Positions 23,761 to 58,416 of a stretch of DNA of 64,000 nt are shown here, piece after piece. A program made the position numbers and the translations under genes. Position 1 is the first letter of the stretch. Each line of letters opens with the position of its first letter. Below the pieces are notes generated by a model, which saw nothing but the letters and a program-made list of their open reading frames with translations, was not told where the DNA came from and made no database searches. The stretch lies in the IMG/VR virus record IMGVR_UViG_3300047558_000137, positions 62,001 through 126,000 of that record; one strand, 5' to 3'.

Positions 23761-23766
23761 GCACCT

Positions 23767-23775
23767 ATTATAACA
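23767..23775 (-). promoter_or_regulatory. Extended -10 promoter for the lipoprotein gene
   Basis: TGTTATAAT (TGn-TATAAT) 6 nt upstream of the ATG at 23760. Confidence 0.5.
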
Positions 23776-23785
23776 TAGTTTCGAA

Positions 23786-25130: not shown

Positions 25131-26155
25131 AGATACATTGTCTCCATTGACTGAGGATTATCTAGAATATTTTGTATATTGATATTGTGTATGTTAGGCC
25201 TACATGGCTGGCAAAAAGCAACTCTAGTTTGATTATAAACTTCCATATGACGCTCACCCAACCATTCATCTCTAAAGTCACCCGAGTCCCACGACCCAAT
25301 TCTGAAATTAGGATTACCTTTATTTTCACAGCAGGTGTATATTCCACCATCTGCACAGAACACAGGAAAATGAAACATCTGATGACACTTCTTATAATTA
25401 CGTGTTAGATACTTGTTTAAGTTGATTTTATGTTCAACTTGATATCTCTTGCCTAGTTCATCTATCAGGGCCAGAGTCTTATTAGATATGTGGTATGCTA
25501 CATTGTTAACAATAGCCGGCCTAAAAAATACTGATCTGGCTCGTGTATCTCGGACTAACATAAAAATATCTGTTAGGGCCTGTTCGTTATCGTTGTAATC
25601 ATTAAGCAGTATTTTAAAATCAACATTTACACCAGCATCGATTAACCCACGTGCATTATTAATAACCTTGTTAAAGATACTTTTTTTAGGTATAGAACGT
25701 CGAATAGTTTCGTATAATTCTTCTGTTGCGGCATCTATATCAATACCTACCCAACCTAATTTGCGTAGCTTATCTACTGGTACTTTATTAAGTAATACAT
25801 CTAAGTTTGTGCCATTGGTTGTAATACTGGTTAGGAATCCTAGATCAATGGTATGTTCGATTACGTTTTCGTACCCTTTAAGCAAGGTGGGTTCCCCTCC
25901 GCCCGGGTAAGTGATAGTGTGTAAACTGCCATAGCTTCTGGGACTATGTGAACGCCAAGAAGCCAAACGATCTAGTAATTCTATATATTCACTGTATTGT
26001 TTTTGTACAGGCATTTCTTTTCTAAACTCTGCACTGTTACAATAGAAGCAATCTTGATTGCAGATATTAGTTAGGTCTATGTCGATTGATGCAGGCAATA
26101 TCTTCATGGTAGATGAATTGCCCATCCAGTGTACTACTTCAGCGTATTGATACAT
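25127..26155 (-). CDS. Radical SAM protein with SPASM/twitch-like C-terminus
   Basis: CNQDCFYC, GGGEPTL, TTNG; C-terminal C...ADGGIYTCC...CQPC. Confidence 0.85.
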   Translation of the reverse strand: MYQYAEVVHWMGNSSTMKILPASIDIDLTNICNQDCFYCNSAEFRKEMPVQKQYSEYIELLDRLASWRSHSPRSYGSLHTITYPGGGEPTLLKGYENVIEHTIDLGFLTSITTNGTNLDVLLNKVPVDKLRKLGWVGIDIDAATEELYETIRRSIPKKSIFNKVINNARGLIDAGVNVDFKILLNDYNDNEQALTDIFMLVRDTRARSVFFRPAIVNNVAYHISNKTLALIDELGKRYQVEHKINLNKYLTRNYKKCHQMFHFPVFCADGGIYTCCENKGNPNFRIGSWDSGDFRDEWLGERHMEVYNQTRVAFCQPCRPNIHNINIQNILDNPQSMETMYL

Positions 26156-35808: not shown

Positions 35809-36747
35809 TTAGATTTCTCTTTTTTCAATTGAGCCTAAAACTTGATGTGCCTTAACTGTTTTTAATGTGCCAGGTTTTTTAATTTCCAACCAACTAATAT
35901 TCGAACCATAGCTTTCATCATGCAATAGTTCAAATCCTAAACTCAAACATAATGGTACCAACAGGCTTTTTGGTAGATATGTTTGACTAAACTTTTCAGC
36001 CATACCTGCACCTGCAGGAGTATCGCCGTCGTTATAACTAAACAAGAACACGCCGCCGGGTCGCATTAATTCGTGTAATTGTTTTAGCATCTGTGTAACT
36101 GTATCAAAACTAACATAGTTAAAGAATCCCCAACTAAACACAAAGGCAAATTGATTTACTGGCAACGCAGATAAATTGTGATCAATCAGTTGATACTTGC
36201 GTAAACGTGCTTGATATACAGGCGGAAAACGATCGTTTGTACTATTTAGAAATTCAATATGCCTATCAGTTATGTATAACGGATCGCCTGCTACTAGATG
36301 CTGTGTCCATTCTCCATCTCTACAACCAATTTCTAATACAGGGTATTTCCAATCAGTATATCTTGCAATTTTTTGTCGAATAATAACTTCTAAGTCTGCG
36401 GTTACTTCAAGACGACGATTGTTCCTAACTTGCTCTACACTACCAACTCTTTCTTCAAGTTCATAATTGTTAGCAAACAGTTCTCGGGTCTTTAATAGTA
36501 TTCTACTGTCAATTGAATTTACGTGATCGTCTACACTTTTAAGTGTTTGATCTATACGTAGAAGAATTTGTTCGTAGTCTTTAACTAAAGTTAAAATAGC
36601 ATTCTTATACTCTGGGCGAGTGTCGGGGATTTCATCAATGATGCCTTGAAGTTTACTTTTAACATCATTAATGTTATCCACAGTGGGGCTTATATTAACT
36701 GCACTAGTTAATGATTGTTTTAACTTAGTTAAGTTATATAAGCTCAC
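35809..36747 (-). CDS. Class I SAM-dependent methyltransferase with N-terminal coiled coil
   Basis: VLEIGCRDGEW, FAFVFSWGFFNY, LMRPGGVFLFS. Confidence 0.8.
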   Translation of the reverse strand: MSLYNLTKLKQSLTSAVNISPTVDNINDVKSKLQGIIDEIPDTRPEYKNAILTLVKDYEQILLRIDQTLKSVDDHVNSIDSRILLKTRELFANNYELEERVGSVEQVRNNRRLEVTADLEVIIRQKIARYTDWKYPVLEIGCRDGEWTQHLVAGDPLYITDRHIEFLNSTNDRFPPVYQARLRKYQLIDHNLSALPVNQFAFVFSWGFFNYVSFDTVTQMLKQLHELMRPGGVFLFSYNDGDTPAGAGMAEKFSQTYLPKSLLVPLCLSLGFELLHDESYGSNISWLEIKKPGTLKTVKAHQVLGSIEKREI

Positions 36748-39634: not shown

Positions 39635-39925
39635 TTATTGTAATAACATCCTAGCCAACGCAATACTATCAATTGACACTAATAGTAAGTAATTGGCCAG
39701 CATACCAAAACTTTTGCGGCTCCACGCACTCCATCCAAATATAGCGCATTGTGTAATAAACAATGGATAAAGGATCAGGAACGGTGGATTAGGTACAGTC
39801 AGCATCATTGTAAAACTACAGGCAATGCTTAACGCCCATGCGGTAATCTCAAGGAAGCAGCGAACAGGGTTACTGCGCCAATCTTCCTTGATCCAGTTTA
39901 CGGTATTGTAAAATAGTTCTATCAA
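39635..39925 (-). CDS. Small membrane protein
   Basis: 96 aa, about 3 hydrophobic helices. Confidence 0.65.
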   Translation of the reverse strand: MIELFYNTVNWIKEDWRSNPVRCFLEITAWALSIACSFTMMLTVPNPPFLILYPLFITQCAIFGWSAWSRKSFGMLANYLLLVSIDSIALARMLLQ

Positions 39926-40188
39926 AGTGTCTTGCCAACAGTTTCCAAGATGGTGTTTAGTTCATCATGATCACGGTTAGTTTCGCCTAGTTTAGCCTTA
40001 TGTGCAATTTTAATTGCCTTCTTTAATGTAGCTGGTTTAATTTCAAGTTCTTCTGCGATAGCTTTAATGGTATCGTTAAGACCTTCATTAAGTGTATCAA
40101 CTTCATGAAGTACTTGCATGCCTTCATTAATAAGTTGAGTAAGTTTAATTTTGGCATCGCCATTGAAACTGCGGTTATAGTCGCTCAT
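39922..40188 (-). CDS. T4 DsbA-like dsDNA-binding protein
   Basis: 88-aa helical protein with IK.IAEELEIKPATLKKAIK pattern; strong SD and promoter. Confidence 0.55.
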   Translation of the reverse strand: MSDYNRSFNGDAKIKLTQLINEGMQVLHEVDTLNEGLNDTIKAIAEELEIKPATLKKAIKIAHKAKLGETNRDHDELNTILETVGKTL

Positions 40189-40846: not shown

Positions 40847-41512
40847 TCATTTTTTCTTTGCGCGACCAGATTTCATGTTAGCCATCCAGTGTGCCAATTG
40901 GCCTCTTCGGCCACCTTGTTTGGCTATTTTGCGTAGACTTGATATGCTGCCTTTTGTTGGAACATTGTAACGCTTGCTGTCACCTTTATCTTCAGGATGG
41001 CGGCCATCGTGGAAGTTTTCTTTAAGATGTTCTTCGTCACGAGCCAATACAGCCTGCCCAATTCGCTCACATAACTGATTTAGTTTGGCATTATCGGTTT
41101 CGACTAGTTTGAACTTGTGTTGCCCATTATCTTGACTAGGATCCATATATCCACAGTAGACATAGTCAATCCCTAAATCTTCTAGTAGATCTGTGCAACT
41201 TTCATTGTAACGTAATTCCATACGTTGGTCACTACAAGGACTTAGCGTTGTAACTATAATGGATCCAGCGGGCAAGTCACCGTATTCTTTATTATAAGCA
41301 TCAATAGCTGTGCGTTCAGCATGGCACCAAAGTTCTGGATTGTCACTAACTAATGTGCCCAATCTTAGAACTCGTTGACCGTTAGGATCAACTACTGCGG
41401 CACCAACCCAACTGTGTTTTTCGTTGTCGTTGTCAACAATCATTTCGCAAAGGTCAACTAATACTTGATCTAAATCATTTTCTGCTGATTGAGTAAATTC
41501 GCTTAGTCTCAT
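40847..41512 (-). CDS. Zn-dependent deaminase-fold protein with capsid-targeting-like N-terminus and basic C-terminal module
   Basis: HAE...PC..C motif; MRLSEFTQSAE N-terminus; basic module after HLKE. Confidence 0.7.
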   Translation of the reverse strand: MRLSEFTQSAENDLDQVLVDLCEMIVDNDNEKHSWVGAAVVDPNGQRVLRLGTLVSDNPELWCHAERTAIDAYNKEYGDLPAGSIIVTTLSPCSDQRMELRYNESCTDLLEDLGIDYVYCGYMDPSQDNGQHKFKLVETDNAKLNQLCERIGQAVLARDEEHLKENFHDGRHPEDKGDSKRYNVPTKGSISSLRKIAKQGGRRGQLAHWMANMKSGRAKKK

Positions 41513-42144
41513 AGTATGTTCTTATAGTCTAGAAAATTGGCGTGACGATCTTGCAGTCCGCGCAAGGCAGGATTAATAAACTTAGTTACCAATGCAGTAT
41601 CGGCAAAGTTTTTAACGTTTGGTTTTACACGGGTGTTCCAGTACCATACTGCAATCTTTGCAGCCACATCGGGTCTGGCAGCTAGTTCTGGTTGTTGCTC
41701 TAATGGCAAACCTAACGCACGTCCGGCCATTTGATAATTAGCACGACCTGTAATTTGTATATAACCGCGACCATGATAACGTGCGCCATCACCGGGATGT
41801 GTGTTACCTAATATCCGAGCTTTGTCTGGAGAGTGCCGTGGATCGTATCTACGTGTGAAATACTGTGCGCCGCCAATTTCTTTCATACGACTAAAGTCGG
41901 CCGACTCGTGTTTAGTTTGTGCTAGAAATTGTGCTAACTCTACCCCACGTAGCCCATACTTCATTGCAGTCTTTTGTAATAGTATTTCTTTATCGGGATT
42001 ATTACTTAGAACATTGTATGAAGTTGGTGCCTTCATTCCCAAACCAGCTTGTGCAGCACCTGTTGCAGCCATGGCACCGGCACCTGCTAATCCACGCAGG
42101 AAACCTCTACGGTCCATTTCTGTAACAAATTCTGTTGCTCTCAT
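41509..42144 (-). CDS. GH19 lysozyme/chitinase-like hydrolase with CTS-like peptide followed by a Tat-like signal
   Basis: FLAQTKHESA, YHGRGYIQITGRANY, A.W(Y/F)W, T.(F)INP; N-terminus MRATEFVTE-MDRRGFL...AAQA. Confidence 0.85.
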   Translation of the reverse strand: MRATEFVTEMDRRGFLRGLAGAGAMAATGAAQAGLGMKAPTSYNVLSNNPDKEILLQKTAMKYGLRGVELAQFLAQTKHESADFSRMKEIGGAQYFTRRYDPRHSPDKARILGNTHPGDGARYHGRGYIQITGRANYQMAGRALGLPLEQQPELAARPDVAAKIAVWYWNTRVKPNVKNFADTALVTKFINPALRGLQDRHANFLDYKNIL

Positions 42145-42824
42145 TGCTTTAGGTGTTCGGGATTAGTTTGATTATAGTTACGCATGATAACGCCAGCTTC
42201 GGCGTTGGCTTCGTTTTCTTCTGGTGTACCTGTACCGCCTGCACCTGCTTCTAACCGGCCTTCACTATCTTGTTTGTAGTGTACAAGCTCGTGTGCAAGT
42301 GTACGCATGACATCCACAGGATGACGAGTGCCGACAACTAGCTTAATAGTTTTTTCATTTGGATTATATGTACCAAATGTAGTATCTTCAGGTTGATCTA
42401 AAAATACAATTTTAGGCAAATCCTGTAGTCCAAGCTCTTTGGCAACCCAAGGAATAAACTTCTTAACTAGTTCAACAGAAGATTGGTCTTCTGCATCCTC
42501 GCCTACATGCTTGAAGTATTGTACTTGACGTTCTCTTTTTTCTGCACCAGCATGACTAGGATATGTGCCCAAATTCTTGCCAGTGTGGCTTACTAGACGA
42601 TATCCGCCTTTTACTTTGCGAATGGTCTCGGCGATTTCTTGTAACTTTCTAACTGTTTGTGGTGTACAGACAATCTGTTTAATTTCAAAACTACTGTTAG
42701 GAAATTTAGTTTTAATGTTATTGTAGTCTAATAGAACCTCGGCCTCATCAGATGACTTGCTGATAGGCTGTCCGTCTTTATATAAGACGTACTCGGATTC
42801 GTTTAGAAAGTCTCTAGCTCTCAT
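42141..42824 (-). CDS. Modular virion-cargo-like protein with a zincin (HExxH) domain
   Basis: MRARDFLNE N-terminus; LAHELVHYKQ...ENEANA. Confidence 0.7.
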   Translation of the reverse strand: MRARDFLNESEYVLYKDGQPISKSSDEAEVLLDYNNIKTKFPNSSFEIKQIVCTPQTVRKLQEIAETIRKVKGGYRLVSHTGKNLGTYPSHAGAEKRERQVQYFKHVGEDAEDQSSVELVKKFIPWVAKELGLQDLPKIVFLDQPEDTTFGTYNPNEKTIKLVVGTRHPVDVMRTLAHELVHYKQDSEGRLEAGAGGTGTPEENEANAEAGVIMRNYNQTNPEHLKQ

Positions 42825-43255
42825 TTTAGGCTTGCACGTAGCATCCAGCTATGCTTTTCGTGTGCATCCATGCGTTCTGCTAGGAAGTTGCTGAAGCCAT
42901 GCTTACCGTGGATCTCTGCAATGTCGTAAGTCATCTTAAGAATAGTAACCATGTTGCGGCTGTCTTCTAACAATTCAGCAATCATCTGCTCAGGCGGCAA
43001 TACATCAGTCTCATCTTCGATACGACTTAACATGTTAAAACGACTGTTACTACCAGGAGCATACGCACCTAGAGCACGAATCTTTTCTGCAAAGTCGTCA
43101 ACGCTTCCGTAGACTTCTTCGTATATTGTACCAAACAAATCGTGTAGTTCTTTGAAGTTAATACCTTCTACGTTCCAGTGAAAGAACTGTGCTTTCAAAT
43201 AAAATGTAAACTCGCTAGCAAATGCTACTTTGGCTGCTTTATGTAATTCTTCCAT
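42821..43255 (-). CDS. dps: Dps-family ferritin-like protein
   Basis: FHWNVEG..F..LH.LF...YE.....DDFAEKIRALG, HEKHSWML. Confidence 0.9.
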   Translation of the reverse strand: MEELHKAAKVAFASEFTFYLKAQFFHWNVEGINFKELHDLFGTIYEEVYGSVDDFAEKIRALGAYAPGSNSRFNMLSRIEDETDVLPPEQMIAELLEDSRNMVTILKMTYDIAEIHGKHGFSNFLAERMDAHEKHSWMLRASLK

Positions 43256-45681
43256 TATTTCTTACCTTTGCGGATTGACTCTGCAATCATCATTAATTCG
43301 TTAAAATCTTCTACGCTTTCGCAATTCCATTTACGAAGTGCTAGCGCCTTACGTGTAGGCTCACCATTTGGTTTCTTCATTGGACCATCTACACCTGACA
43401 TACGGGCACAGAAACTTTTACGGCGTTTAGCATCCTTGCTACCTGGCTTTAGTTTGCTAGGTTTAGTAGTAACTGCTGTTTGCAGTTTGCTACCAGGATG
43501 TTCGCGGCGATAACTATCAACGCCCTTTTGGTTTAGGCCGCCGTTTTTGTTTTTGCCCGACTTCTTTTGCCATGCTGCACTTTCGCCATATTGTTGACGA
43601 TAGTGCTTTAACATACTCATAGCAGTTTCTTTACTCATGCCAGTTTTAATAGTCACACCATTAGCACTTAACAATTCATATACTTCGTATGTTCTACCAT
43701 CCGGGGCTGTTCTAGTTACTTTACGGATCAGAGGCTTACCTGTTGCTTCTGCCACACCTTCTCTTCCATAATGAAAGATAGATTCTAATTCATCTACTAG
43801 TTTATGGTAGTGAGTTGTGCCATCTAGTCTTTCTGGATTAGCGATAACTCCAGTTGCGTAAACCATTGCTCTAAAGAACTCTGGGCTTGCATCTACTTCG
43901 GCTTTTACTGATGGATTGGTTTTATAAACCTGAATCATCTTTCTTGCAGCACGACGGTATTTGTTATCAATACCTTGTTCTTCGCCTTCCTCCACGCCTT
44001 GCTTTAACTTTTTAATGGTCCAAGAACCATCGTTGTTCATATAGTAAAGTTCTTTTTTATGTTCACTGGCACTCCCATTCGGCGAAAGGCTACCCGACAT
44101 TTCTTCCATATATTCTGGACTATAAACATTAGGGTCGCAAATTACTACGTGATCAGCATAATAGATTTTGTTGCCTTTTATAGTTGGCTCTGATGTTAAG
44201 CCTTCCGCCACACCTTGGTCTTTATTAAATCCAAAATTACCAAACTGACGATAGAACTTTATTGCGTCATTGAAATATGCGTTAAATTCTGGTGTACCTT
44301 TTTTATACCCAATCTTTGTTAATTCTTGTTCAATATGTCGAACCAATGGCATCTCTGCTTTTAGTAGTTCTGGAGCACCTTCAGACATACCACCTGCTAA
44401 TTCTTCTTCGCTCCAGCCAATATAACTATCGCCGTCTTCGTCGCCGATACGCATAACAAACGCACCGCCTTCTTCGCTTTCAAGTTCGCCGATTTCCCAC
44501 CCAACTTTAGCTAGTGCTTGCTCTACTCGTTGTTGTGTAGCAACGTCGGGTGCAGAAAACCACATTTTGGCAAGATGGAACAGCGCATCTTCTGGACCAT
44601 CACCATTGTCATCGCCTGCTGCATATTCGTTAAGACCTTCTTGGTCAGCAACAGCTTGTAGTTCTTTTGCAATTCTAGCCAAATTCTTAGGACTCAGTTC
44701 GGCAATCATGCTGTCCAAGTCGCCCTCGTACTGATCCCAGAACTGTGCAAACAATGGCGCACTAGTATTCAAATACTCTAGTGCATCGTCGCCTTGATCA
44801 TATATTGATTGATACAATTGACGAATAGTATCACCCAGACCTTGGCTTTCTGCCATAGGTGCTGCACCGCCTGCACCTAATGTTGCACCAGCTGGTAAGT
44901 GCCATGCATCTGCAGGCTCATTACCTGTACCGTGCCAATCATCTTCATTTATGTCTGCATCAAAATAGTTTTGTGCATAGGCACGAACTTCGTCATCATT
45001 GTAGAATGGTCCTGCAACTTGATATCCGCGACTGTAGTCTTTCTGGATATGTTTCATAATATCGTTTGGAGTTAAGTAACTCATAAAGTTACCTCCCCAA
45101 TTGTAAGGTGGGTTACCGGATACAGTAGTTTCTTTCCAACGGCCACCATCCTGTGTCAATGCACCAATGAATACTCCTTCGTCTTCACTGGCAACTATAA
45201 CGTAGAAACCATCTACATATTCATCAGACTCTTCATCTTGATCATAGTCATTTTGGCTAACATCGCTAGAGTGGAAACTTACAAGACCGTGGTTATATAA
45301 ATTAACAACAACAAAACGCTTGTCTTGTCCAAAGTCTGTAATAACACCAGTCGCACCTTTATACTGTACATCGCCAGTAACAATGACGTCGTCGCCGATG
45401 TTTAGCTCTTCAGCATTTTCCGCCATGGCTTTCTGGTAAGCAATTTCGGTGTTATTGGCCATTTGTTGCTTGAAGTTGTCAACTGCACCGCCTGGGTCAA
45501 TTGATCCTGGAGTGGTAGGTATTGGAGCACCTTCTTTGACTTTTTTAACTTTAACGCAACTATCTGTACCATTCTTAGTACCGTTATAACGATACCCGTC
45601 CCAGCAAGCCTTGCCGTCTGCACCTTTAATTTTCTTGGATTCTTTTATCGGCTTTGGCCCAATGATGTCATCTAGAAACAT
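43255..45681 (-). CDS. Polyprotein-like multidomain protein (808 aa)
   Basis: Modules separated by Phi-X-E motifs (IKE, VKE, MAE, INE, LNE, MSE, VAE); basic C-terminal module ending ...RKWNC. Confidence 0.7.
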   Translation of the reverse strand: MFLDDIIGPKPIKESKKIKGADGKACWDGYRYNGTKNGTDSCVKVKKVKEGAPIPTTPGSIDPGGAVDNFKQQMANNTEIAYQKAMAENAEELNIGDDVIVTGDVQYKGATGVITDFGQDKRFVVVNLYNHGLVSFHSSDVSQNDYDQDEESDEYVDGFYVIVASEDEGVFIGALTQDGGRWKETTVSGNPPYNWGGNFMSYLTPNDIMKHIQKDYSRGYQVAGPFYNDDEVRAYAQNYFDADINEDDWHGTGNEPADAWHLPAGATLGAGGAAPMAESQGLGDTIRQLYQSIYDQGDDALEYLNTSAPLFAQFWDQYEGDLDSMIAELSPKNLARIAKELQAVADQEGLNEYAAGDDNGDGPEDALFHLAKMWFSAPDVATQQRVEQALAKVGWEIGELESEEGGAFVMRIGDEDGDSYIGWSEEELAGGMSEGAPELLKAEMPLVRHIEQELTKIGYKKGTPEFNAYFNDAIKFYRQFGNFGFNKDQGVAEGLTSEPTIKGNKIYYADHVVICDPNVYSPEYMEEMSGSLSPNGSASEHKKELYYMNNDGSWTIKKLKQGVEEGEEQGIDNKYRRAARKMIQVYKTNPSVKAEVDASPEFFRAMVYATGVIANPERLDGTTHYHKLVDELESIFHYGREGVAEATGKPLIRKVTRTAPDGRTYEVYELLSANGVTIKTGMSKETAMSMLKHYRQQYGESAAWQKKSGKNKNGGLNQKGVDSYRREHPGSKLQTAVTTKPSKLKPGSKDAKRRKSFCARMSGVDGPMKKPNGEPTRKALALRKWNCESVEDFNELMMIAESIRKGKK

Positions 45682-45682
45682 T

Positions 45683-47617
45683 TTATTTCATTCCTTGCTG
45701 TTTAGATACCTGTTGCAATATGCTAGCAACTTGTCCACCTTTTTGTGGATCTGCTAGTGCATCACCAACTAGATCAGCTAGGGCCTTTGTTTGTTTTACA
45801 TCAGTTGATGCCATTGGCTTGCTTGGATCTGTTGCAATACCTTGTATTGCGTGTGATGCTTGTGCAACGTTAATACTCTTATCGGCACCTGCAATCTTAT
45901 TTAAGTTTGCTTTTTGAGCTTGTGCAGCTTGTGGGTCCGGTTGTTGTGGTTGTCCTGGTTGTTGTGCGGCAGGATTAGCAGTACCGCCTGTAGTCATGCC
46001 GTACTCTTTAATCTTACGTGGGGTTTTGCCTTCTGGGTGCTTGCGAATAATAACGCCAGCTTGTCCCATTTTCTGCAATGGTAATACATCATAGCTGCCA
46101 CCTAGAACTTGTTCTACATAACCAATTAGTTCTTTAGTAGTAAAGCCCTTTTGATATGTGCCTGCACTGGTAATAACACTCATTGGCTCTGGACCTGGCT
46201 TACCATTCTTAAGAGCACTTAATACATCTTTGCCACGAGTAGTAATCAACGCAACACCACCTGGTGCTAAAATACGACCAATGTTCTGTACGATCTCTTG
46301 ACGTAGTTTAGGTGGAACAACGTTCAATACGTTAAAGTTAGTTACACGATGGTAAGCATTATCTGGAATAGCTGTAAAGTCTGTGTATGTTGGCTTTACA
46401 TCTTTCTTTGGATATGGCTCATAGCTATCAGCACCCAATTCAGCAGCACCTAGGCCTAGGCCTGATCCAATATCAATGGTTTTGCCTGTTGGACTATGTG
46501 TGTCTAAGTGTGCGCGAGCTTTTTTGTATGTTGGTAGTGTACCGGGAATCTGTGTACGCTGTGCATTTTCTGGTGGAGGTAATTCTTCATCATCCTCATC
46601 AATGCTCTTACTTTGTTCTTGATACAAGGCGTGTAACTCAGCTGGTTCGATTTCGAAACTAACGCTTGCTTGTAATAGTGCTTCTTTATATGATGCACCT
46701 GCATTGTGAATAAGATCCTGCATCAATGCTACAGCTTCTCTAGAATCTAATGCTTCTGGACTAGTAATATTGCCCATCATGACGTCAAACTTTTCATCGC
46801 CAGTGGATTCTTTAACTAATTCGTGACCACCTTCCATGATAGCAAGTTCTTTATCAGTAAATTGCTTGCTAGATTCTCTAACTGGTGGCATCCATTTCTT
46901 AGCCTTGGCGCCTAGCTTTTGTTCTAAGTTGGCAACAGTTTTGTCTACTAGTTCCTGACTAGCACCTGCCTGTGGCTTATAGAACCATGCACCATTACGC
47001 GATTGGCGTAGACCTAACTGTTGTAGTTGTTGATCTGTAAAACTACCAGCAATGTTTCTTAAATTAAAGAAATACATGCTCTTATCAGCTTCTGCTGTGC
47101 CCTGTGGAATATAAGCATCGCCCACAGGATTAACAGTACCATTTGGCCATTTAACGCCAATGGTCATATTAGGATACTTAGACTTAATAGCACCAGCATG
47201 ACGGAACGCATCGTTGCTATTAGTATGTTGTTTCATATCAATCCACTGTGCGCCCTGTTTTTTAACAACACGGAAGTCGCCTTGTGGATCTTCTTCGCCG
47301 GTGACATCTGGACCACGACGACTAAATGGTTTAGCATGGAAGTTATGATCGTAACCTTCATCAAACTTTGCAAACTCTTGCTTTAGTCTGCGCTCAACGC
47401 TGCCTTCAACTACTTGCTTATCTAAGTCACGAAGAATACTTTCGGCTGCACCTACTAACCGTCCAGCAAATGGGTGTTCGCCCGACTTTTTTGCTTTGGC
47501 TTTTTCGGTACCACGTACTTGGTCGCCAGCCTTCTGGCCTTTCTTTTCTCCTGCAAAAGAGAATTTGGTACCCTCATGGATACCATCCAAAATGGATAGT
47601 GATTTTTTAATGTCCAT
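45683..47617 (-). CDS. Polyprotein-like multidomain protein containing a class I methyltransferase domain (644 aa)
   Basis: IDIGSGLG...NVLNVV...ILAPGG; Phi-X-E linkers (IHE, VVE, VRE, IME, VKE, IDE, IKE). Confidence 0.7.
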   Translation of the reverse strand: MDIKKSLSILDGIHEGTKFSFAGEKKGQKAGDQVRGTEKAKAKKSGEHPFAGRLVGAAESILRDLDKQVVEGSVERRLKQEFAKFDEGYDHNFHAKPFSRRGPDVTGEEDPQGDFRVVKKQGAQWIDMKQHTNSNDAFRHAGAIKSKYPNMTIGVKWPNGTVNPVGDAYIPQGTAEADKSMYFFNLRNIAGSFTDQQLQQLGLRQSRNGAWFYKPQAGASQELVDKTVANLEQKLGAKAKKWMPPVRESSKQFTDKELAIMEGGHELVKESTGDEKFDVMMGNITSPEALDSREAVALMQDLIHNAGASYKEALLQASVSFEIEPAELHALYQEQSKSIDEDDEELPPPENAQRTQIPGTLPTYKKARAHLDTHSPTGKTIDIGSGLGLGAAELGADSYEPYPKKDVKPTYTDFTAIPDNAYHRVTNFNVLNVVPPKLRQEIVQNIGRILAPGGVALITTRGKDVLSALKNGKPGPEPMSVITSAGTYQKGFTTKELIGYVEQVLGGSYDVLPLQKMGQAGVIIRKHPEGKTPRKIKEYGMTTGGTANPAAQQPGQPQQPDPQAAQAQKANLNKIAGADKSINVAQASHAIQGIATDPSKPMASTDVKQTKALADLVGDALADPQKGGQVASILQQVSKQQGMK

Positions 47618-48216
47618 TAGTAGGCACCTTTAACTTTAACTAACTTAGGCTTGGTAGCAATATTTGTATATCCACCTAGCTTCTTATTAACCTGCTTGCG
47701 GGTCATGCCCTCTTCGCCTAATTCTTTAACTACTGCACTAACAGAACTAGAGCAACTTGCACCACCTGTAGCATCTTCTCTAATTTTTAAATTCTTAGTA
47801 AGATCAGCTGCATCGCCACCAAAGAATCCCTTAAATGCATCTCTGTACTGTTGTTGTCTTTGTTGCTTTTCTTGTTGTCTTTTAGTTGGCTGTGCTGCTG
47901 GCTTCTTTTGCTTAGGCTCTGAACCTAACATTTCAGACATCTGCGCTTCTGCGTCTGCTGGATTAAATCCTGGGATTTCTTCTTGCTTGCCCATTTCGTG
48001 CTGACTAATCATATAGTCCATAACACTAACAATCATGCCTTTAACTTGGGCAATCTTTTCTTGGCACCACTCTGGCAAGTTTTCGTTATCGCCGATGGCA
48101 CGTTCTAGGTGTGTGGATACGCGAATAATAGTATGCAGGTTGTTTTTAAACATGCCCGCTTCGTCATCATATTCAGCATCTTCTGTGTAAGAGTTAATAA
48201 AATCTGTAGTTTTCAT
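47617..48216 (-). CDS. Hypothetical protein with CTS-like N-terminus
   Basis: MKTTDFINSYTE; first gene after the late box at 48238-48243. Confidence 0.7.
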   Translation of the reverse strand: MKTTDFINSYTEDAEYDDEAGMFKNNLHTIIRVSTHLERAIGDNENLPEWCQEKIAQVKGMIVSVMDYMISQHEMGKQEEIPGFNPADAEAQMSEMLGSEPKQKKPAAQPTKRQQEKQQRQQQYRDAFKGFFGGDAADLTKNLKIREDATGGASCSSSVSAVVKELGEEGMTRKQVNKKLGGYTNIATKPKLVKVKGAY

Positions 48217-48237
48217 AGGGAATTCCGGCCTTTTGTA

Positions 48238-48243
48238 TATTTA
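48238..48243 (-). promoter_or_regulatory. T4-like late promoter box TAAATA for the cargo operon
   Basis: GCTAAATAT 21 nt upstream of the ATG at 48216. Confidence 0.55.
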
Positions 48244-48246
48244 GCA

Positions 48247-48543
48247 CTATACGTAAAAGGTGAATTCTTGAAATTCCTGTGAACTACTGTCGGGCAATAA
48301 TCTACCATCAACTGTTACGTTTTTAAATGATATATTATTGTTAGGGGCACAATTATAAATTTTTACTTGATGAGCGCCGTGTTCTACTTCTACTTCTATG
48401 TGCTCTTTAATGTATGTTTCGTAGCTAGGCCATGCCCAGGTACGTTCGGTTAGCAAATCATCGTCTACGTAGACACGATATACAGGACTGCAATCCCAAT
48501 CTTTGTGGCAATACACATCAATTGTGAGAGCAGCGTGTGCCAT
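48247..48543 (-). CDS. Hypothetical beta-rich protein
   Basis: 98 aa; resembles 49328..49774 (W...P.Y.(V/I).V.....). Confidence 0.6.
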   Translation of the reverse strand: MAHAALTIDVYCHKDWDCSPVYRVYVDDDLLTERTWAWPSYETYIKEHIEVEVEHGAHQVKIYNCAPNNNISFKNVTVDGRLLPDSSSQEFQEFTFYV

Positions 48544-49289
48544 TATTTTAACCCCGCGGCCTGTATTGTTTTGGGCAGTTTAGGATATCTAGTAGATACC
48601 ACTTCTTCCTGTTCTGCCATGGGGATTTTGTCCATAATGCGCCCTAGTTCAGCGTCATTGCGTCCAAACATCTGCATTAAGAATGTTGATCTTAATTCAG
48701 GATTGTTTCTAATCTGATTCCAAGTGTTGCGTACATCTGTGCCGTGACTTACATCAACTGCATCTTCTTCAAGATTAACTTCAGCCTCTTGCTCGGGAAC
48801 AATAATAACATACCCATGTTGATCTGCTGTTACTGCATTATCAGGGCCTTCCCAGGTTTGATAGTAAGTAGGGTCGCCTACACTTTTGCCAGCTGGCAAT
48901 GTGTTTCTTTGTCCGTTTTTCTTAAACTCTTGATATGTACCATCTACATTTAACCGTGCAGCATCGGGCGCACCTACTGCGGTAATAAACACAGTGCGGT
49001 TCTTTTGTGCCTCAAATTGTTTGGGGAATGTGTATAGGCTGCTAGCCTGTATGATACGGTCTTGTGCCACGCCCTGCGCTGTCATGAATTTAACTCTATC
49101 ACTAAAGTTAAATGGACTGTCGTCTTTAACGATACCCGATGTAACTACGTAAACATTATCACGGCCAAATCGGCCCTGTAACTTCTCGTAAACTGCACGG
49201 TGATTAAGACCAAAGGGCTGAAAACGCCCTGGGTATGTTACAACCAAGTTAACCGGGTCTAGGGATTCAAGTAATTCGTTTATAAACAT
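48543..49289 (-). CDS. HIGH-type nucleotidyltransferase-like protein
   Basis: VVTYPGRFQPFGLNH, SPFNFSDR, GTDVR; late box at 49310-49315. Confidence 0.6.
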   Translation of the reverse strand: MFINELLESLDPVNLVVTYPGRFQPFGLNHRAVYEKLQGRFGRDNVYVVTSGIVKDDSPFNFSDRVKFMTAQGVAQDRIIQASSLYTFPKQFEAQKNRTVFITAVGAPDAARLNVDGTYQEFKKNGQRNTLPAGKSVGDPTYYQTWEGPDNAVTADQHGYVIIVPEQEAEVNLEEDAVDVSHGTDVRNTWNQIRNNPELRSTFLMQMFGRNDAELGRIMDKIPMAEQEEVVSTRYPKLPKTIQAAGLK

Positions 49290-49327
49290 AGTAGCATATT
49301 ATACTACTATATTTAGTTTATTTTGGT

Positions 49328-50856: not shown

Positions 50857-51579
50857 TTATTTATGTGGCATTACAACCAGCTCATGACAATTTGATATCA
50901 AATCCGGGGACATTAAACGAACCATAGTATTAATACCTTCGTCGTTGCTGTAAAAATAGCAATTCCAAATATAAGAACTACCTTTTGACAGCATATCTAA
51001 TGTGCCTTTTGGAACATGGACTAGATCTGGCCCTAAATTAGAAAGATACAGATAAAGACTCTCTTTTACATGGGCAGAGAATGTGCCATCTTTAATGATA
51101 ACTTTATAACGATACCCGAGATCATTCTTTCGAATAATAGCGCCAGAGTTTAATATAGCTTCTGCTTCGTCATCTTCGGGCCCATATACAGACTCAACAT
51201 GGGTTTTATATGTGGGTATATATGTTTCAACAATATTACGCATATCATCGTCGGTTTGTGCATATACCTGTATGCGCGGTTCTTCGACTCGCATCTTTAT
51301 TCCGGGGATATTGGCCTGTTTGAGATTGCGTAGTTGTTCCAATAAAACAACATCGGCAGAATTTACATTAGACTGTCGAATATGGCGATACCACCAAGAT
51401 CCGCCAGGGTTGTAATTCTTACGGAATTCTATTTCTTGGGCGATATCGCCATTGCTTAAAATCAATCTACCAGCAGGAGCATACAATACCATTTTATATA
51501 GGTACTTGCCATAGTATTTTTTGGCTGTATGTCCTACTGTTATTTTAGGATTGGACTGAATCCAATACGATATATCCAT
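50857..51579 (-). CDS. Hypothetical protein
   Basis: 240-aa ORF overlapping the clpA stop. Confidence 0.7.
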   Translation of the reverse strand: MDISYWIQSNPKITVGHTAKKYYGKYLYKMVLYAPAGRLILSNGDIAQEIEFRKNYNPGGSWWYRHIRQSNVNSADVVLLEQLRNLKQANIPGIKMRVEEPRIQVYAQTDDDMRNIVETYIPTYKTHVESVYGPEDDEAEAILNSGAIIRKNDLGYRYKVIIKDGTFSAHVKESLYLYLSNLGPDLVHVPKGTLDMLSKGSSYIWNCYFYSNDEGINTMVRLMSPDLISNCHELVVMPHK

Positions 51580-53833
51580 TATTATCTACCATAGGAGTGC
51601 TCGGAGCATACGATCCCTGCGGAGTAAAGATGAATCCATCGTTAATGTAATCAACTTCAATCAATGTATATGCAGGAATGTTCTCGAACAATATCTTCTT
51701 ACTTAGCGGGACCTTAATAAGATCGCTAATTTTACGTGCAAGGGGTCGTGCGCCAAGTTTAGGATCATATCCTACCTTGCTCAATTGATCCACAGCCGCT
51801 TCAGTTAACCGAATCTTAACAGATTTCTCTGACAACAGTTCGTTAACTTCGTTAATAAATTTGCTAACAATCTTCTTGATGCTAATTTCATCAAGTTTGT
51901 TAAATTTACAGATGCCATCTAAACGGTTACGGAATTCAGGTTTAAAGAATTCTTTAACTGCTCGGTCATCTTCTCCAGTTTTTTGCAAATCACGGCCAAA
52001 GCCAATGTTATTGCGTTCATTATCTGCCGCACCTAAGTTACTTGTTAGAATAACAATAGCATTACGGGCATCGGCCTTTTTACCATTGGAACTAGTAATA
52101 GTGCCTTCATCCATAAGTGCCAGCATAATATTCATAATATCTGGATGTGCTTTTTCAACTTCATCAAGAAGAATAATACAGTTAGGATTCTTCTCAATAT
52201 CGCTAATAAGCAGGCCGCCGCCTAAGTTACCATCATCGAAGCCAACGTAACCGGGGGGAGCACCAATCAGTTTCGCAACTGAGTGCTTCTCTTGGTATTC
52301 ACTCATATCGTAGCGTAGTAGTTTCATCCCGAGATTCTCGGCTAGCAACTTTGCTAACTCAGTTTTACCTGTACCAGTGGGGCCCAGAAACAAGAAGTTA
52401 CCAATAGGTTTGTTCATTGCTTTTAGACCGGCACGAGCCACGTAAATCTTTTCCAGCACAGTACCAACAACTTGGTCCTGGCCATATAGTTTGTTCTTAA
52501 TATTTGATTCAAGATCAACAAGAGAGTTGGTATTATCACTGCCAATTTGGTCAACTGGAATCTTAGTAAACTTACTAATAATATCCACAATGTGACTCTT
52601 ACGGCAAGTCCAGCTAATAGCATTGATCTTTAGCTTTGCACAGGCTGTATCAACAAGATCAATAGCTTTGTCAGGCAACTTCTTGTCTGTTTGATAGCGT
52701 ACACTTAGATCAACTGCGGCATCTAATGCCTCATCGCTAATACTACCGCCATGAAATTCTTCAAAGTAACCACGTAGTCCACGCAAAATCTCTTTTGCTA
52801 CCTGTGGAGTAGGCTCTTCTACAGTCATACGATAGAAACGGCGCATCAACGCACGATCCTTTTCAAACGATTGGCTGTATTCTTCCCAAGTGGTTGATGC
52901 TACTACCTTAATATTGCCTTTAGTTAGTGCAGGCTTAATCATGTTAGCAAAGTCAACACTGCTATTGCTACCAGTGCCGGCGCCACGCATCTGATGTGCT
53001 TCATCAATAAACAAGATGCACTTGCCTTTGCTGTTTAACGCACCAATAACATCTTTAAACTTCTCTTCAAACTCGCCGCGGTACTTAGATCCAGCAAGCA
53101 AACTGCCAATGTCTAGGTTATAGACTGTATAGTCTTGTAGGTAATTAGGTACTGCACCATTAACAATGTTACGTGCCAGTCCTTCTGCAATAGCAGTCTT
53201 ACCAACTCCGGGGTCGCCTACTAACAATACGTTAGATTTGTTACGCTTAGCCAATACTTGTGCAATCTCATCAAGTTCGAACTCGCGACCAACAACTGGA
53301 TCAATTTGATTGTCCTTGGCTTTGGCGTTAAGGTTGTCGCAATATTCTTTAAGAATCTCTTCTGCGCGGGCACTGTTTGCATTGCCGCGGCGCTGTTTGC
53401 TCTCTACATAGTTCTTATTGTAGTAATCAACAAACTGTGTGCGTTCTAGACCGTACTTGATAAAAAAGTAACTGGCGTGACTATTTGTTTCGCTTGTGAT
53501 GCTTAGAAAAATGTCAATAACTTGTAAGTGACTGCGACCACTAAACAATACTTGTGTAAATGCACGGTTAAACACACGCTCTAGGCTGTGAGTTTTCTTA
53601 GCAACATGATCTGGATCTCGACTAACAATAGCAGTTTGTGCATCTAGGTAGTCTTCAATGTCTTTGATCATGGCATCTGCATCTGCCCCATATGCTACAG
53701 TTAGATCATAAAACGGCTTATAGGTCATAAGACCGTGTGTTAGATGCTCTAACGTCACGTATTCGTGATTGTATTTCTTTGCCAGATCAACTGCACTGGC
53801 AATAATAGTTTCAATTTCGGGGTTTTGATTCAT
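51545..53833 (-). CDS. clpA: ClpA-like two-AAA-domain unfoldase
   Basis: HEYVTLEHL N-domain, GDPGVGKT, FIDEAH, GPTGTGKT, LLDEVEKAH, IGF ClpP-docking loop, GARPL. Confidence 0.92.
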   Translation of the reverse strand: MNQNPEIETIIASAVDLAKKYNHEYVTLEHLTHGLMTYKPFYDLTVAYGADADAMIKDIEDYLDAQTAIVSRDPDHVAKKTHSLERVFNRAFTQVLFSGRSHLQVIDIFLSITSETNSHASYFFIKYGLERTQFVDYYNKNYVESKQRRGNANSARAEEILKEYCDNLNAKAKDNQIDPVVGREFELDEIAQVLAKRNKSNVLLVGDPGVGKTAIAEGLARNIVNGAVPNYLQDYTVYNLDIGSLLAGSKYRGEFEEKFKDVIGALNSKGKCILFIDEAHQMRGAGTGSNSSVDFANMIKPALTKGNIKVVASTTWEEYSQSFEKDRALMRRFYRMTVEEPTPQVAKEILRGLRGYFEEFHGGSISDEALDAAVDLSVRYQTDKKLPDKAIDLVDTACAKLKINAISWTCRKSHIVDIISKFTKIPVDQIGSDNTNSLVDLESNIKNKLYGQDQVVGTVLEKIYVARAGLKAMNKPIGNFLFLGPTGTGKTELAKLLAENLGMKLLRYDMSEYQEKHSVAKLIGAPPGYVGFDDGNLGGGLLISDIEKNPNCIILLDEVEKAHPDIMNIMLALMDEGTITSSNGKKADARNAIVILTSNLGAADNERNNIGFGRDLQKTGEDDRAVKEFFKPEFRNRLDGICKFNKLDEISIKKIVSKFINEVNELLSEKSVKIRLTEAAVDQLSKVGYDPKLGARPLARKISDLIKVPLSKKILFENIPAYTLIEVDYINDGFIFTPQGSYAPSTPMVDNNGYIVLDSVQS

Positions 53834-53842
53834 ATCAGATAT

Positions 53843-54685
53843 TTATTTTGGATTGATTAGTGAACGAACAGTTTCTAGTTGCTCGCTGTTAAGATCTTTT
53901 GGGACAAACAGATTTAGCTCTGCATACAAATTACCTCTAGTGTTGCTGTTAAGTTGATACAATCCTTGTCCGGGAATCCTGAATTTAATTCCAGGTTGTG
54001 TGCCGGGTGGTATTGTAATCTCAAATATTTTATCATCGATTGTGGTGATAGTTGTTGTGCCGCCAGCAATCGCTAATAAACAGTTCACGCTAATTTTACT
54101 ATATAAATCGATATCTTGCACGACAAAATTGTCCAATGGGGCAACCGAAATGTGTACATACAAGTCTCCACGTGGAATAGTGCTAAACAAATTGTCGCCC
54201 AAATTTGGATATTTTATCTGAGTGCCGTGATGTACGCCACGTGGTATCCGTACCTCAACAGTTTCTCGTTGTCCATTTGTTGTCTGTACACTGATTGTTG
54301 TATTTTGTTCACTTAATGTAGATGCCAATGATACCGGTATATTAACACGAAGGTCTTTGTTTCTTCGCATTTGTCTTTGAAAAGGACTTTGGCCTCCAAA
54401 GTTAAATCCAAAATTTTGGAATATTTGATCTAGGTCTGGGTGCGACCCAGGTCCATTCCATTGGAAATTAAATCCACTAGGCATGCCGCCACCGCGACGT
54501 TCTAAATCATACTGCTGTCGTCGATTTGGATCACTTAACGTGTCGTAGGCAGTTTGAATAGCTTGGAATCGAGCCGTGTCTCCGCCCTTGTCAGGATGAT
54601 GCTGACTTGCAAGTTTTCGGTATGCCTTTTTAATTTCATCTGGTGTAGCTGTTTCGCTTACACCCAATGTTTCGTAGTGAGTCAT
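53843..54685 (-). CDS. J-domain co-chaperone (class II, CbpA/DnaJ-like, no Zn finger)
   Basis: YETLGV, HHPDKGG (HPD), G/F-rich linker, GDLYV C-terminal domain. Confidence 0.9.
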
Positions 54686-57026: not shown

Positions 57027-57281
57027 TTATTTTACTCCTTCGAATATTCTTTTTTGTATTTCGTACCATTCATTCCATTTATCAATTTTAACTGCACATT
57101 CATAGTATGTAGCATAGTTAATATTAACAGTGGAACTAACGTCACTTAACTTTGCACCTTCGGCTAGTTTTTGTAACTGTGGGCAAGTCTGTGCGTTTTT
57201 AGGTGCTTCAGGAAACTTTGCTGTTACTGGAACAACAGTTGAACATCCAGATAACAATAATGCCGCTAATAGATATCTCAT
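57027..57281 (-). CDS. Outer-membrane spanin (Rz1-like lipoprotein)
   Basis: LSGC lipobox, Pro-rich, Cys; follows the i-spanin. Confidence 0.7.
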   Translation of the reverse strand: MRYLLAALLLSGCSTVVPVTAKFPEAPKNAQTCPQLQKLAEGAKLSDVSSTVNINYATYYECAVKIDKWNEWYEIQKRIFEGVK

Positions 57282-57742
57282 TTTGGTTGCTCCGCCGACA
57301 TGTTATGTGCATCAATGAATGCTTTAGGGATAACACATTGATTGTTGTATTTTGCAACTTCGCGATCGATATATTGCTTAACAATAACTTCGCGGCCCTT
57401 TATTACTTTGACCTTCTCTGCTGACTTCTTATCTAATGCTAGATTAGCAGCCTTAGATTCCTCTTCGGCCTTGGCAACTTTGGCTTCCATTTCTGCAACA
57501 CGCTCACGCCATTGCATCTCTGTAGCATACCCACCTTCGAAGTATATACCGGCAGCTAAAAGAGCTGCACTAGCAACCTGTGCTAGTGTTACATATTTCG
57601 ATAATGGCGGGAACCAACGTAGTAGTCGATTGACAACAAAGAAGAATAGTACACAACCAACAATCCCGGCCAATAGGATAGTGTGTACAATAAATTGTAT
57701 AAAACTATCTGGTAGGAAATGTAGCAACCACATGTTATGCAC
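57278..57742 (-). CDS. Inner-membrane spanin (Rz-like)
   Basis: N-terminal TM helices, coiled coil, C-terminal C.IP motif; follows the endolysin. Confidence 0.7.
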   Translation of the reverse strand: MHNMWLLHFLPDSFIQFIVHTILLAGIVGCVLFFFVVNRLLRWFPPLSKYVTLAQVASAALLAAGIYFEGGYATEMQWRERVAEMEAKVAKAEEESKAANLALDKKSAEKVKVIKGREVIVKQYIDREVAKYNNQCVIPKAFIDAHNMSAEQPK

Positions 57743-58364
57743 CTAGTACGTGGCAGGCGTGGTTGTAGTGTTTAATACGATCTTCTAATCCAATGGTACC
57801 GCCGTTAATGCGCTTAGTTAGATTTAGAATGTCGCCTTTGTCTGCGTATTGGTTTAAGTTGTTAGCTTCCCAGAACCAAGCGGCACTTTGTACACAACCT
57901 TCAAAAGTTGTTAAGTGTTCGCTAGCTTCTTCTACACTAATTTCTAAACTTTGTGCGTAACGACTGTAGTTGTCCTTACCAGTTAACTGGATAAGTCCAC
58001 GTCCGCAATACTTATATCCATCGCCTGACTCTTCTGGACCGTTGCCCATACGGTTAGCATAGATTCTATTAGCAATAGCCTCTTGCTTGTTAAGCTTTGC
58101 ACAGTATTCTTCTGCTAGTGCATCCGTTGGGAAATACTTACCGAACAACTTACGTAGTGTTGGCGGGCGATAGTTTAAATTCTCTTTAATGGCTTTAAAA
58201 CCACCAGATTCGTGGGCACACTGTGCTAAAAATGCTGCTACACGCTGTGGTGTATCAATATCATAATCTGGTAATATTTCACACAGGGCTTCATGCCAGT
58301 GATCAATATATGGGTTTCCGGGAACGATTTGTTTTAATTGGTCTAATGATAGTTCGAAACTCAT
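57735..58364 (-). CDS. GH19 endolysin
   Basis: FLAQCAHESGGF..ENLNY, YCGRGLIQLTGKDNY, SAAWFW, TKRINGG.IGL.DR; late box at 58388-58393 and AGGAG SD. Confidence 0.9.
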   Translation of the reverse strand: MSFELSLDQLKQIVPGNPYIDHWHEALCEILPDYDIDTPQRVAAFLAQCAHESGGFKAIKENLNYRPPTLRKLFGKYFPTDALAEEYCAKLNKQEAIANRIYANRMGNGPEESGDGYKYCGRGLIQLTGKDNYSRYAQSLEISVEEASEHLTTFEGCVQSAAWFWEANNLNQYADKGDILNLTKRINGGTIGLEDRIKHYNHACHVLGA

Positions 58365-58416
58365 TGAAAAACTCCTAGTGACTAAGATATTTAGCCAAAA
58401 AGGAGTTTAAAATGGG

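Follow-up and report, generated by a model that had tools for sequence, protein, structure and literature searches.

The closest described parallel to the system considered here is found in bacteriophage T4, whose internal proteins (IPs) begin with a short capsid-targeting sequence (CTS) that is removed by the prohead protease gp21. The T4 sequences themselves read MKTYQEFIAE/A in IPII and IPIII, MKTFKEFTSTTTPVSTITE/A in IPI, MAKINELLRE/S in gp24 and MELITELFDE in Alt (a slash marks the cut, here and below for predicted cuts as well), and gp23 is cut at ...GSFLTE/A, i.e. after residue 65. The first 10 residues of IPIII are enough for packaging. Residues 4 and 7 are the main determinants of targeting, whereas residues 8 and 10 are required for processing, and an Asp at position 10 prevents cleavage (PMC9026906). 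The propeptides of gp23 and Alt have 65 and 7 residues, respectively, and the CTS has been speculated to be a general protein-loading route of T4-like phages (PMC9026906). The anti-restriction proteins injected by T-even phages comprise Ip1–3 and at least 10 others (PMC12373910; PMC3012670). Here we describe a nine-residue leader, MRAx[E/D]F[I/L/V]xE, at the start of otherwise unrelated genes in a stretch of 64,000 nucleotides (hereafter the window) that spans positions 62001–126000 of the 374,314-bp metagenomic contig JGI 3300047558 Ga0485289_000001. A megablast search of the region against cultured phages gave no match; only metagenomes have yielded this phage. By DNA polymerase, its nearest cultured phages are Sinorhizobium phage Phosso (52%) and Agrobacterium phage Atu_ph07 (47%), with GAP32 and CBB-type phages next, which places the window phage in the T4-related jumbo group.

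The invariant positions F6, [ILV]7 and E9 of the leader align with F7, I8 and E10 of the T4 CTS, i.e. with residues of CTS targeting and gp21 processing, so that the T4-like character ascribed to these starts in a preliminary description of the window is supported at these positions. In both cases unrelated proteins begin with a short leader, within a range of about 7–19 residues, in which a targeting residue that is aromatic or hydrophobic is combined with an [I/L/V]-x-E site (common core ...EF[I/V/L]xE). Expression may be late in the window phage too, and a gp21-family protease is encoded by relatives of the window phage as it is by T4. The window leader differs in being one residue shorter and in opening with MRA instead of MKT. 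Its cargo consists mostly of enzymes or multidomain proteins of up to about 700 aa, as opposed to small basic proteins, and dozens of cargo families carry it clade-wide in jumbo phages, where it is known from sequence alone. Looser leaders in the window seem to have their own T4 counterparts: MKTTDFINSYTE and MRLSEFTQSAE resemble IPI, and MFINELLE/S resembles gp24 and Alt, just as ..EFITE resembles the gp23 site ..SFLTE/A. The MFINEL class is rare (4 cases), and its cleavage is conjectural. When T4 IPI, IPII, IPIII and Alt were compared by phmmer with all open reading frames (ORFs) of the window and of 135 loci that carry the leader (L001–L135), none matched at E ≤ 0.01; the resemblance is therefore confined to the leader.

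We favour, with a probability of roughly 70%, the reading that MRAx[E/D]F[I/L/V]xE, together with looser MKxxDF.. and MFINELxE starts, is a T4 CTS-type propeptide for capsid targeting, which is portable and has come to stand on many cargo genes. In such a system, (i) the tagged proteins would be made late in infection from CTAAATA late promoters; (ii) through the leader they would dock to the scaffolding core while the prohead assembles; (iii) a gp21-type (Peptidase_S77) prohead protease would cut after Glu9 of the [ILV]-x-E site; and (iv) the mature proteins would be retained in the head with the DNA and, by analogy to the T4 IPs and Alt, would enter the next host at infection. Because the tag is joined to many unrelated genes, the polymerase-side locus would be an exchangeable set of packaged effectors. 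In this phage the set would comprise a peptidoglycan hydrolase, a zincin, a deaminase-fold protein and a cytidylyltransferase-like protein, and in relatives it would include ADP-ribosyltransferase, GNAT, kinase and ParB_N proteins.

The operon at 40847–49289 consists of nine ORFs, tightly packed or overlapping and all on the minus strand, with ATGA start/stop overlaps at three junctions. All ORFs named in the preliminary description exist, but the positions quoted for them are their low (stop) ends and not their starts, because the genes run on the minus strand. The features of the operon and of one distant tagged gene are as follows.

49310–49316, minus strand: putative late-promoter CTAAATA box (T4-type, Aeh1 variant); TAAATA begins 26 nt upstream of the ATG at 49289, the cluster's first gene.
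48543–49289, minus strand: 248-aa cytidylyltransferase-like protein, starting MFINELLE/S, a looser leader variant.
48247–48543, minus strand: untagged 98-aa ORF with no family match; homologues in 5 related loci.
48238–48244, minus strand: second CTAAATA box; TAAATA begins 27 nt upstream of the ATG at 48216 (199-aa gene).
47617–48216, minus strand: 199-aa protein with the N-terminus MKTTDFINSYTE, like that of T4 IPI (MKTFKEFTS...ITE).
45683–47617, minus strand: 644-aa protein without leader (MDIKKSLSILDGIHE); weak S-adenosylmethionine (SAM)-methyltransferase match.
43255–45681, minus strand: 808-aa protein with a C-terminal DUF6321 domain; clear leader absent (MFLDDIIGPKPIKE).
42821–43255, minus strand: 144-aa Dps/ferritin-like protein, untagged.
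42141–42824, minus strand: 227-aa HExxH zincin-like protein; leader MRARDFLNE at 42798–42824.
41509–42144, minus strand: 211-aa GH19 peptidoglycan hydrolase; leader MRATEFVTE at 42118–42144, then a twin-arginine (Tat) signal (MDRRGFLRGLAGAGAMAATGAAQA).
40847–41512, minus strand: 221-aa cytidine/dCMP-deaminase-fold protein, starting MRLSEFTQSAE, with a basic C-terminal tail module.
4802–4808, minus strand: CTAAATA box; TAAATA begins 10 nt before the ATG at 4797.
4333–4797, minus strand: distant tagged gene, 36 kb from the operon, for a 154-aa DUF6934-like protein; leader MRATDFITE at 4771–4797.

The shared start is not a product of chance. M[RK]xx[DE]F opens five of the 86 greedily called window genes, whereas a null based on N-terminal composition gave three or more tagged genes in 2 of 20,000 trials and five in none. 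The motif does not occur internally in the 20,576 residues of the window proteins, and back-translated MRAx[DE]F[hydrophobic]xE has three matches in the window versus none in 100 shuffles. We accordingly reject chance as the source, and the claim that the same short peptide opens otherwise unrelated ORFs stands. An equal frequency among early and metabolic genes, a pattern that the preliminary description had set against its own proposal, is not seen in the window: none of its replication and nucleotide-metabolism genes (dihydrofolate reductase, thymidylate synthase, polymerase, clamp and exonuclease) is tagged.

Selection acts on the peptide. Within the leader, synonymous codons (GCA/GCC/GCT/GCG, TTT/TTC and GAA/GAG) occur at background frequencies, and there is no nucleotide conservation either in the 40 nt upstream of the ATG (0–0.3 bit per position) or after codon 9. 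Both results argue against a promoter or ribosome-binding-site cassette or an mRNA element, and a DNA cassette was rejected as an explanation.

The TAAATA boxes noted earlier before 48216, 49289 and 4797 are real, and all read CTAAATA on the minus strand. This heptamer is the late-promoter consensus of the T4-like phage Aeh1 (PMC1524935). On the minus strand of the window, 7 of its 13 copies are found in the 60 nt before a gene start (∼0.9 expected), and it also precedes the untagged GH19 gene and the clamp gene; scans of the operon for sigma-70 promoters and terminators showed no enrichment. From their sequence and position, we regard the boxes as putative T4-type late promoters of the tagged genes.

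We then compared the window with related DNA. Loci related via the zincin gene encode different proteins that open with MRASEFVVE, MRAKEFLLE, MRAKDFLRE and MRAREFIRE. A scan of IMG/VR DNA with the pattern M-R(AGA)-A-x-[DE]-F-[hydrophobic]-x-E yielded at least 120 stretches with matches. Of the 157 matches listed, 152 stand at the beginning of an ORF of 60 aa or more, nearly always just a few codons past the preceding in-frame stop; many stretches hold 2–4 tagged genes, and 116 of the 120 stretches are interlinked via shared untagged genes. Random matches are not expected to start ORFs in this way. The true tag count should be several-fold higher, because the scan took only AGA, about a third of Arg codons. 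MRAx[DE]F starts 172 of the 1,700 unique genes of these loci, and another 32 have M[RK]xx[DE]F variants that the pattern did not force; with these variants (among them MRLxEF, MRFxEF and MKxxEF) included, the tag is present on about 12% of all genes there. Half of the listed stretches share a non-cargo gene with the window (polymerase, clamp or thymidylate synthase). The network of shared genes assigns the tag to one broad clade of uncultured T4-related jumbo phages, and the scan of relatives proposed in the preliminary description has thus come out in its favour. A search of the accessible literature for the leader strings found nothing relevant.

The cargo is diverse. After removal of the leader, the 146 complete tagged proteins among the matches listed fall into 29 similarity clusters, and a Pfam census of 90 tagged proteins includes GH19, DUF6267, DUF6321, DUF6934, LysM, GNAT, tail-type lysozyme, ADP-ribosyltransferase, amidoligase, ParB_N and a 'polyvalent-protein' kinase. 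The suggestion that this system is far richer than the T4 IP locus is therefore well founded, with at least 29 cargo groups across a large uncultured jumbo-phage clade. The leader is also modular. Cyanophage DUF6267 proteins begin (MAKNTHLEH..) exactly where the tagged ones run on past the leader (..GREFNHLED..), and in related loci the leader, or a variant of it, opens all 4 DUF6934 homologues; the zincin homologues start with it or with a close variant in about three quarters of cases, and all 17 Dps homologues are untagged.

GH19 provides an internal control, since the window contains a second, untagged copy.

57735–58364, minus strand: untagged GH19 paralogue with its own CTAAATA box at 58388–58394, adjoining small membrane-protein genes at 57027–57742.

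Orthologues of the tagged GH19 (45–64% identical to the window copy) carry the leader or a variant, often at the N-terminus of larger proteins, whereas orthologues of the untagged copy never bear it. The tagged and untagged paralogues thus split cleanly, which makes them a ready-made natural experiment. The untagged protein is probably an endolysin, because its gene adjoins small membrane-protein genes and has its own CTAAATA box; the probable lysis cassette (57027–58394, minus strand) would consist of this gene followed by small genes at 57027–57281 and 57278–57742. The second small gene was read as a membrane protein by eye and has no Pfam family. In many relatives, homologues of both small genes flank pairs of ∼125-aa tagged proteins.

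The tagged GH19 has a twin-arginine motif, a hydrophobic region and an AxA site at its N-terminus (Pfam TAT_signal at residues 9–29, 23.6 bits versus a cut-off of 22.7). The leader is directly followed by a Tat signal in GH19 proteins of three phages, i.e. in the window, at 2992–3609 of L026 and at 2–385 of L096. This signal may mean that the protein is exported by the producing cell, or that it is routed a second time once injected. Removal of the leader would put it at the new N-terminus.

The functional labels of the other operon proteins differ in strength. Within the proposed payload, the deaminase (dCMP_cyt_deam_1, E 2e-10), GH19 (Glyco_hydro_19, E 4e-14) and cytidylyltransferase-like labels hold, the last with a weak CTP_transf_like match and an Atlas score of 0.95 with TM 0.81 (strong by Atlas). 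The zincin label is weak: HExxH is present in the 227-aa protein, and the M78/SprT-like lead scores only 0.85. The methyltransferase label is weak as well, since the match of the 644-aa protein (Methyltransf_23, E 2.7e-4) lies below the Pfam cut-off; the protein has no clear tag. PDB sequence searches with the 248-, 644- and 227-aa proteins returned no significant match. A 675-aa protein of L003, unrelated to the 248-aa window protein, begins MFINELFE. Residues ∼10–75 of the 199-aa protein form a module that is also found within large proteins of related loci and in T4-like cyanophages. Kinship of this protein with the large ∼125-aa tagged family was considered and rejected, because the alignments show a ∼60-aa module common with large multidomain proteins.

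Three further observations concern cargo modules. First, the basic tail of the deaminase (40847–41030, C-terminal ∼60 aa; ..FHDGRHPEDKGDSKRYNVP...WMANMKSGRAKKK) is a separate module, which in relatives (e.g. L062 at 6342–6548 and L118 at 8928–9188) occurs in tiny proteins made of leader and tail (MKVSEILENFADGRNP.., MRINELFENFADGKNP..) and also at the ends of other tagged proteins. Second, the commonest tagged family (64 of 146) consists of ∼113–141-aa proteins, often in tandem pairs, with a conserved C-terminal motif ..SP[VI]K[PA]FKGY[KP]R (e.g. L125 at 2163–2540, L058 at 10711–11489 and L077 at 5586–6349). It has no Pfam family, and a tblastn search with one ∼125-aa member gave no match in cultured phages; it may correspond to the small internal proteins that abound in T4. 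Third, a short acidic motif, [DE][DE]DMF[AS], recurs many times within large proteins encoded by the syntenic cargo locus, in several ORFs at 7–8058 of L003 (..NDDMFAAK.., ..EDDMFAPS.. and ..DDDNMFASH..), where it could be a docking motif, a cleavage motif or a trace of fused modules.

The locus also invites comparison with other injected or head-packaged protein sets. The polymorphic IP loci of T-even phages (PMC12373910; PMC3012670) and this locus are both hot-spots in which exchangeable genes have nothing but the leader in common, and the gene content of window-type loci differs between relatives (L003 and L006 versus the window). An ADP-ribosyltransferase is found among the tagged proteins of relatives, as Alt is in T4. 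Known IPs are small GmrSD-type restriction inhibitors, whereas the payload here consists of predicted enzymes, and the locus here adjoins a DNA polymerase gene. A CTS, exchangeable IP genes and packaged Alt are already known in T-even phages; what appears to be new is (i) the occurrence, in distantly related jumbo phages, of a nine-residue version that is distinct and highly conserved; (ii) the scale, with at least 29 cargo groups, mostly enzymes or effector-type domains; and (iii) the link to N-termini of the head-core module and the use of the leader as a sequence-based predictor of packaged proteins.

Polyvalent proteins of phages and conjugative elements, which are predicted to be injected with the DNA (Iyer et al. 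2017), have an overlapping domain repertoire, i.e. zincin metallopeptidase, ADP-ribosyltransferase, GNAT, ParB_N, Kinase-PolyVal and peptidoglycan hydrolases, fused in various viral combinations (Atlas). By contrast, most modules here are encoded by genes of their own and bear individual address peptides; the cargo ORFs of the window encode 154–808 aa, and the window cargo is not one very large multi-effector polypeptide. Giant phages of the phiKZ/SPN3US type process many head-internal proteins after Glu by a prohead protease (PMC5694885, PMC10052503). They belong to another lineage, and their propeptides are not a short common N-terminal tag. The phiKZ system has a protease of the gp175 type and long propeptides; here, the head modules of relatives encode Peptidase_S77, and the leader has 9 residues with an [ILV]-x-E site. 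The phiKZ-type prohead protease is of a different family, with the cleavage motif [S/A/G]-x-E.

A candidate protease is present in relatives of the window phage. Atu_ph07 gp204 is a gp21 homologue according to the supplement of the paper on that phage; the Phosso gp21 homologue is 59–61% identical to it (tblastn 59%, alignment 61%), and T4 gp21 32%. IMG/VR holds more than 600 relatives of this protease, and the head modules of relatives run in the order Portal_T4, two small genes, Peptidase_S77, a scaffold-like gene and Gp23. Among the best 80 of these more than 600 protease loci, 16 have genes in common with the window or with leader loci; the best matches are mostly 43–75% identical and in two loci only 31–34%. 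The major capsid proteins of these modules start MSELFES.. and contain ..ALTE/G, which is compatible with an [L/I]-x-E specificity. Neither the window (64 kb of the 374-kb contig) nor the 135 leader loci contain homologues of T4 head genes, Peptidase_S77 included, and an exact look-up placed one relative's protease on other contigs of at most 117 kb.

The head modules also encode leader-like N-termini. A 68–85-aa protein directly after the portal gene, in the position of the T4 core proteins gp67 and gp68, nearly always starts in this manner (MILRELFY, MKLFEMFD, MNLLEIFE, MRFNDILE or MKVKDILIE) and in one locus (L150) reads exactly MRARDFLTE. Its Atu_ph07 counterpart, gp199 (MKLTELFNPLTE; MKLTELF...), is in the virion proteome of that phage (one peptide), together with the protease and the products of the next two genes downstream of it. 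The Phosso gene that follows the protease gene begins MRASELFE. The leader-like starts of the post-portal proteins tie the leader family to the prohead core.

Virion data on a cyanophage concern two domains of the window operon. DUF6321 ends a conserved protein that is encoded between the terminase genes of T4-like cyanophages and is annotated in S-P4 as 'T4-like structural protein GC0119'. In CsCl-purified virions of S-CREM2, mass spectrometry detected ORF137 (DUF6321), the cytidylyltransferase ORF154 and its neighbours ORF155, ORF156 and ORF160; encapsidation was suggested by the authors, who did not draw the link to a leader (PMC10665884). ORF137 matches the 808-aa window protein with 47% identity (blastp, E 8e-17). 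The N-terminus of ORF154, MKNFSSFLTE/ADEK, fits the T4 CTS pattern over ten residues, and MRFLDFIKE opens the cytidylyltransferase of P-TIM40. Thus, cytidylyltransferase and DUF6321 domains found in S-CREM2 virions are both present in the window operon, but S-CREM2 belongs to another phage family (Kyanoviridae), and the cytidylyltransferase-like protein of the window is too distant for a blastp match.

Several points weigh against a capsid-targeting propeptide. In the operon itself, the 644-aa, 808-aa and Dps-like proteins have no clear tag, and the cytidylyltransferase bears only a looser leader variant, resembling T4 gp24 and Alt. The deaminase tag is less consistent: full-length orthologues begin MRLSEFDQ in L118 and MLLSDFRI in L099, and those of L003, L004 and L005 begin MPKLSQKNSDD, with no tag. 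The Tat signal of GH19 fits simple injection poorly and suggests export from the producing cell over packaging. In the harvested set, the search pattern itself imposes part of the conservation at M, R, A, [DE], F and E; independent evidence for the tag is its position at ORF starts, its clustering and the variants that the pattern did not force. As for the head genes, the window contig is not among the best 80 of the more than 600 protease loci, no contig carrying both leader and protease is found among the listed matches (with 80 of the 120 leader stretches named), and the 1.48 Mb around protease genes contains 1 tagged ORF, that of a small post-portal protein. A tagged locus was looked for beside the Phosso DNA polymerase, and none was found. 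The sequences establish that the tag exists, is selected as a peptide, is modular, extends through the clade and resembles that of T4; packaging, cleavage after Glu and ejection are steps that we infer for these proteins by analogy.

Three other explanations were weighed, all of them less likely than a T4-type capsid-targeting propeptide. A ClpA/B-like AAA+ protein and DnaJ are encoded at 51545–54685, and several loci have them close to tagged genes. In three of the tagged GH19 proteins, a twin-arginine signal immediately follows the leader, and the head modules examined contain no tagged gene except that of the small post-portal protein. These facts would suit a leader that tags proteins for some other process, i.e. 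for a phage ClpA/B-type unfoldase with DnaJ, for delivery to a different part of the virion (for example, the tail or baseplate), or as a Tat n-region. We consider this unlikely for three reasons. A Tat motif or any hydrophobic segment at residues 10–50 occurs in only 2 of the 146 tagged proteins, so that the leader is no general export signal, and a general secretion signal was rejected. ClpA and DnaJ are also present in Phosso and Atu_ph07, although the tagged locus is not seen beside the Phosso polymerase. Finally, the invariant residues match the T4 CTS and the gp21 site, and a similar N-terminus is found on a gene product encoded between portal and protease.

It is less probable still that the leader marks substrates of the prohead protease which are transient assembly or scaffold parts, degraded and expelled, and not delivered cargo. 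The T4 core proteins gp22, gp67 and gp68 bear the same cleavage motif and are largely removed (PMC9026906), and the small post-portal proteins with leader-like starts resemble core components. However, the IPs and Alt of T4 have a propeptide of this kind and nevertheless stay in the head until they are ejected (PMC12373910, PMC9026906). Moreover, the tagged set consists mostly of enzymes or effector domains (GH19, lysozyme, ADP-ribosyltransferase, GNAT, kinase, ParB_N and deaminase), and S-CREM2 enzymes with a CTS-like start are present in mature virions.

Finally, the idea that the shared start is a nucleic-acid feature with a functionless peptide, i.e. a translation-initiation enhancer ('downstream box') or a gene-shuffling recombination cassette, is highly improbable. 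In its favour, the A-rich codons of the leader probably form no structure, ATGA overlaps with the upstream stop mark the starts of many tagged genes, mobile regulatory cassettes have been proposed for T4-type genomes and the CTS coding sequence of T-even phages has reportedly been discussed as a site of IP-gene exchange, but the third codon positions of the leader vary at background while the amino acids are fixed, the region upstream of the ATG reaches only 0–0.3 bit per position, upstream contexts vary (ATGA overlaps, CTAAATA boxes and Shine–Dalgarno-like sites), and translation efficiency does not explain F6, the hydrophobic residue 7 and E9.

If the leader is a capsid-targeting propeptide, head-carried and probably delivered proteins could be listed from sequence for hundreds of uncultured giant phages. 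This class, in which anti-defence and host-takeover effectors are expected, is otherwise found only via virion proteomics of cultured phages. The T4 capsid-targeting principle would be of ancient origin, with a use that extends far beyond what the T-even IP loci indicate, and a second, naturally diversified targeting peptide would be available to load foreign proteins into large capsids. A bolder version, which we put forward tentatively and at somewhat less than even odds, is that the proteins packaged and injected by a very large clade of uncultured T4-related jumbo phages are all specified by one nine-residue code (MRAxEF[ILV]xE). Dozens of effector families would then become readable from sequence, including enzymes that modify host proteins, nucleic acids or the cell wall, and at least one cargo, GH19 with its Tat signal exposed by removal of the leader, would be routed from the capsid to the cytoplasm and, via the host Tat system, to the periplasm.

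Some other window genes, all on the minus strand, deserve mention. At 51545–54685, the ClpA/ClpB-type double AAA+ protein (762 aa) adjoins a full DnaJ (280 aa), as reported for Atu_ph07, and the two may be involved in the folding or unfolding of virion proteins. An 88-aa protein at 39922–40188, which adjoins the DNA polymerase and is kept in 31 related loci and in Phosso, is annotated as DNA-binding in Phosso and has a weak, sub-threshold match to T4 DsbA, a late-transcription enhancer (E 1e-3). The gene at 19213–20499 encodes a 428-aa protein of the isocitrate lyase family (Pfam ICL, E 1e-102) with a homologue in L119; among the auxiliary metabolic genes of phages, one from the glyoxylate shunt is unusual. 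An FG-GAP repeat protein (22558–23859), a radical-SAM enzyme (25127–26155) and a SAM-methyltransferase (35809–36747) are encoded amid sugar-modifying and replication genes.

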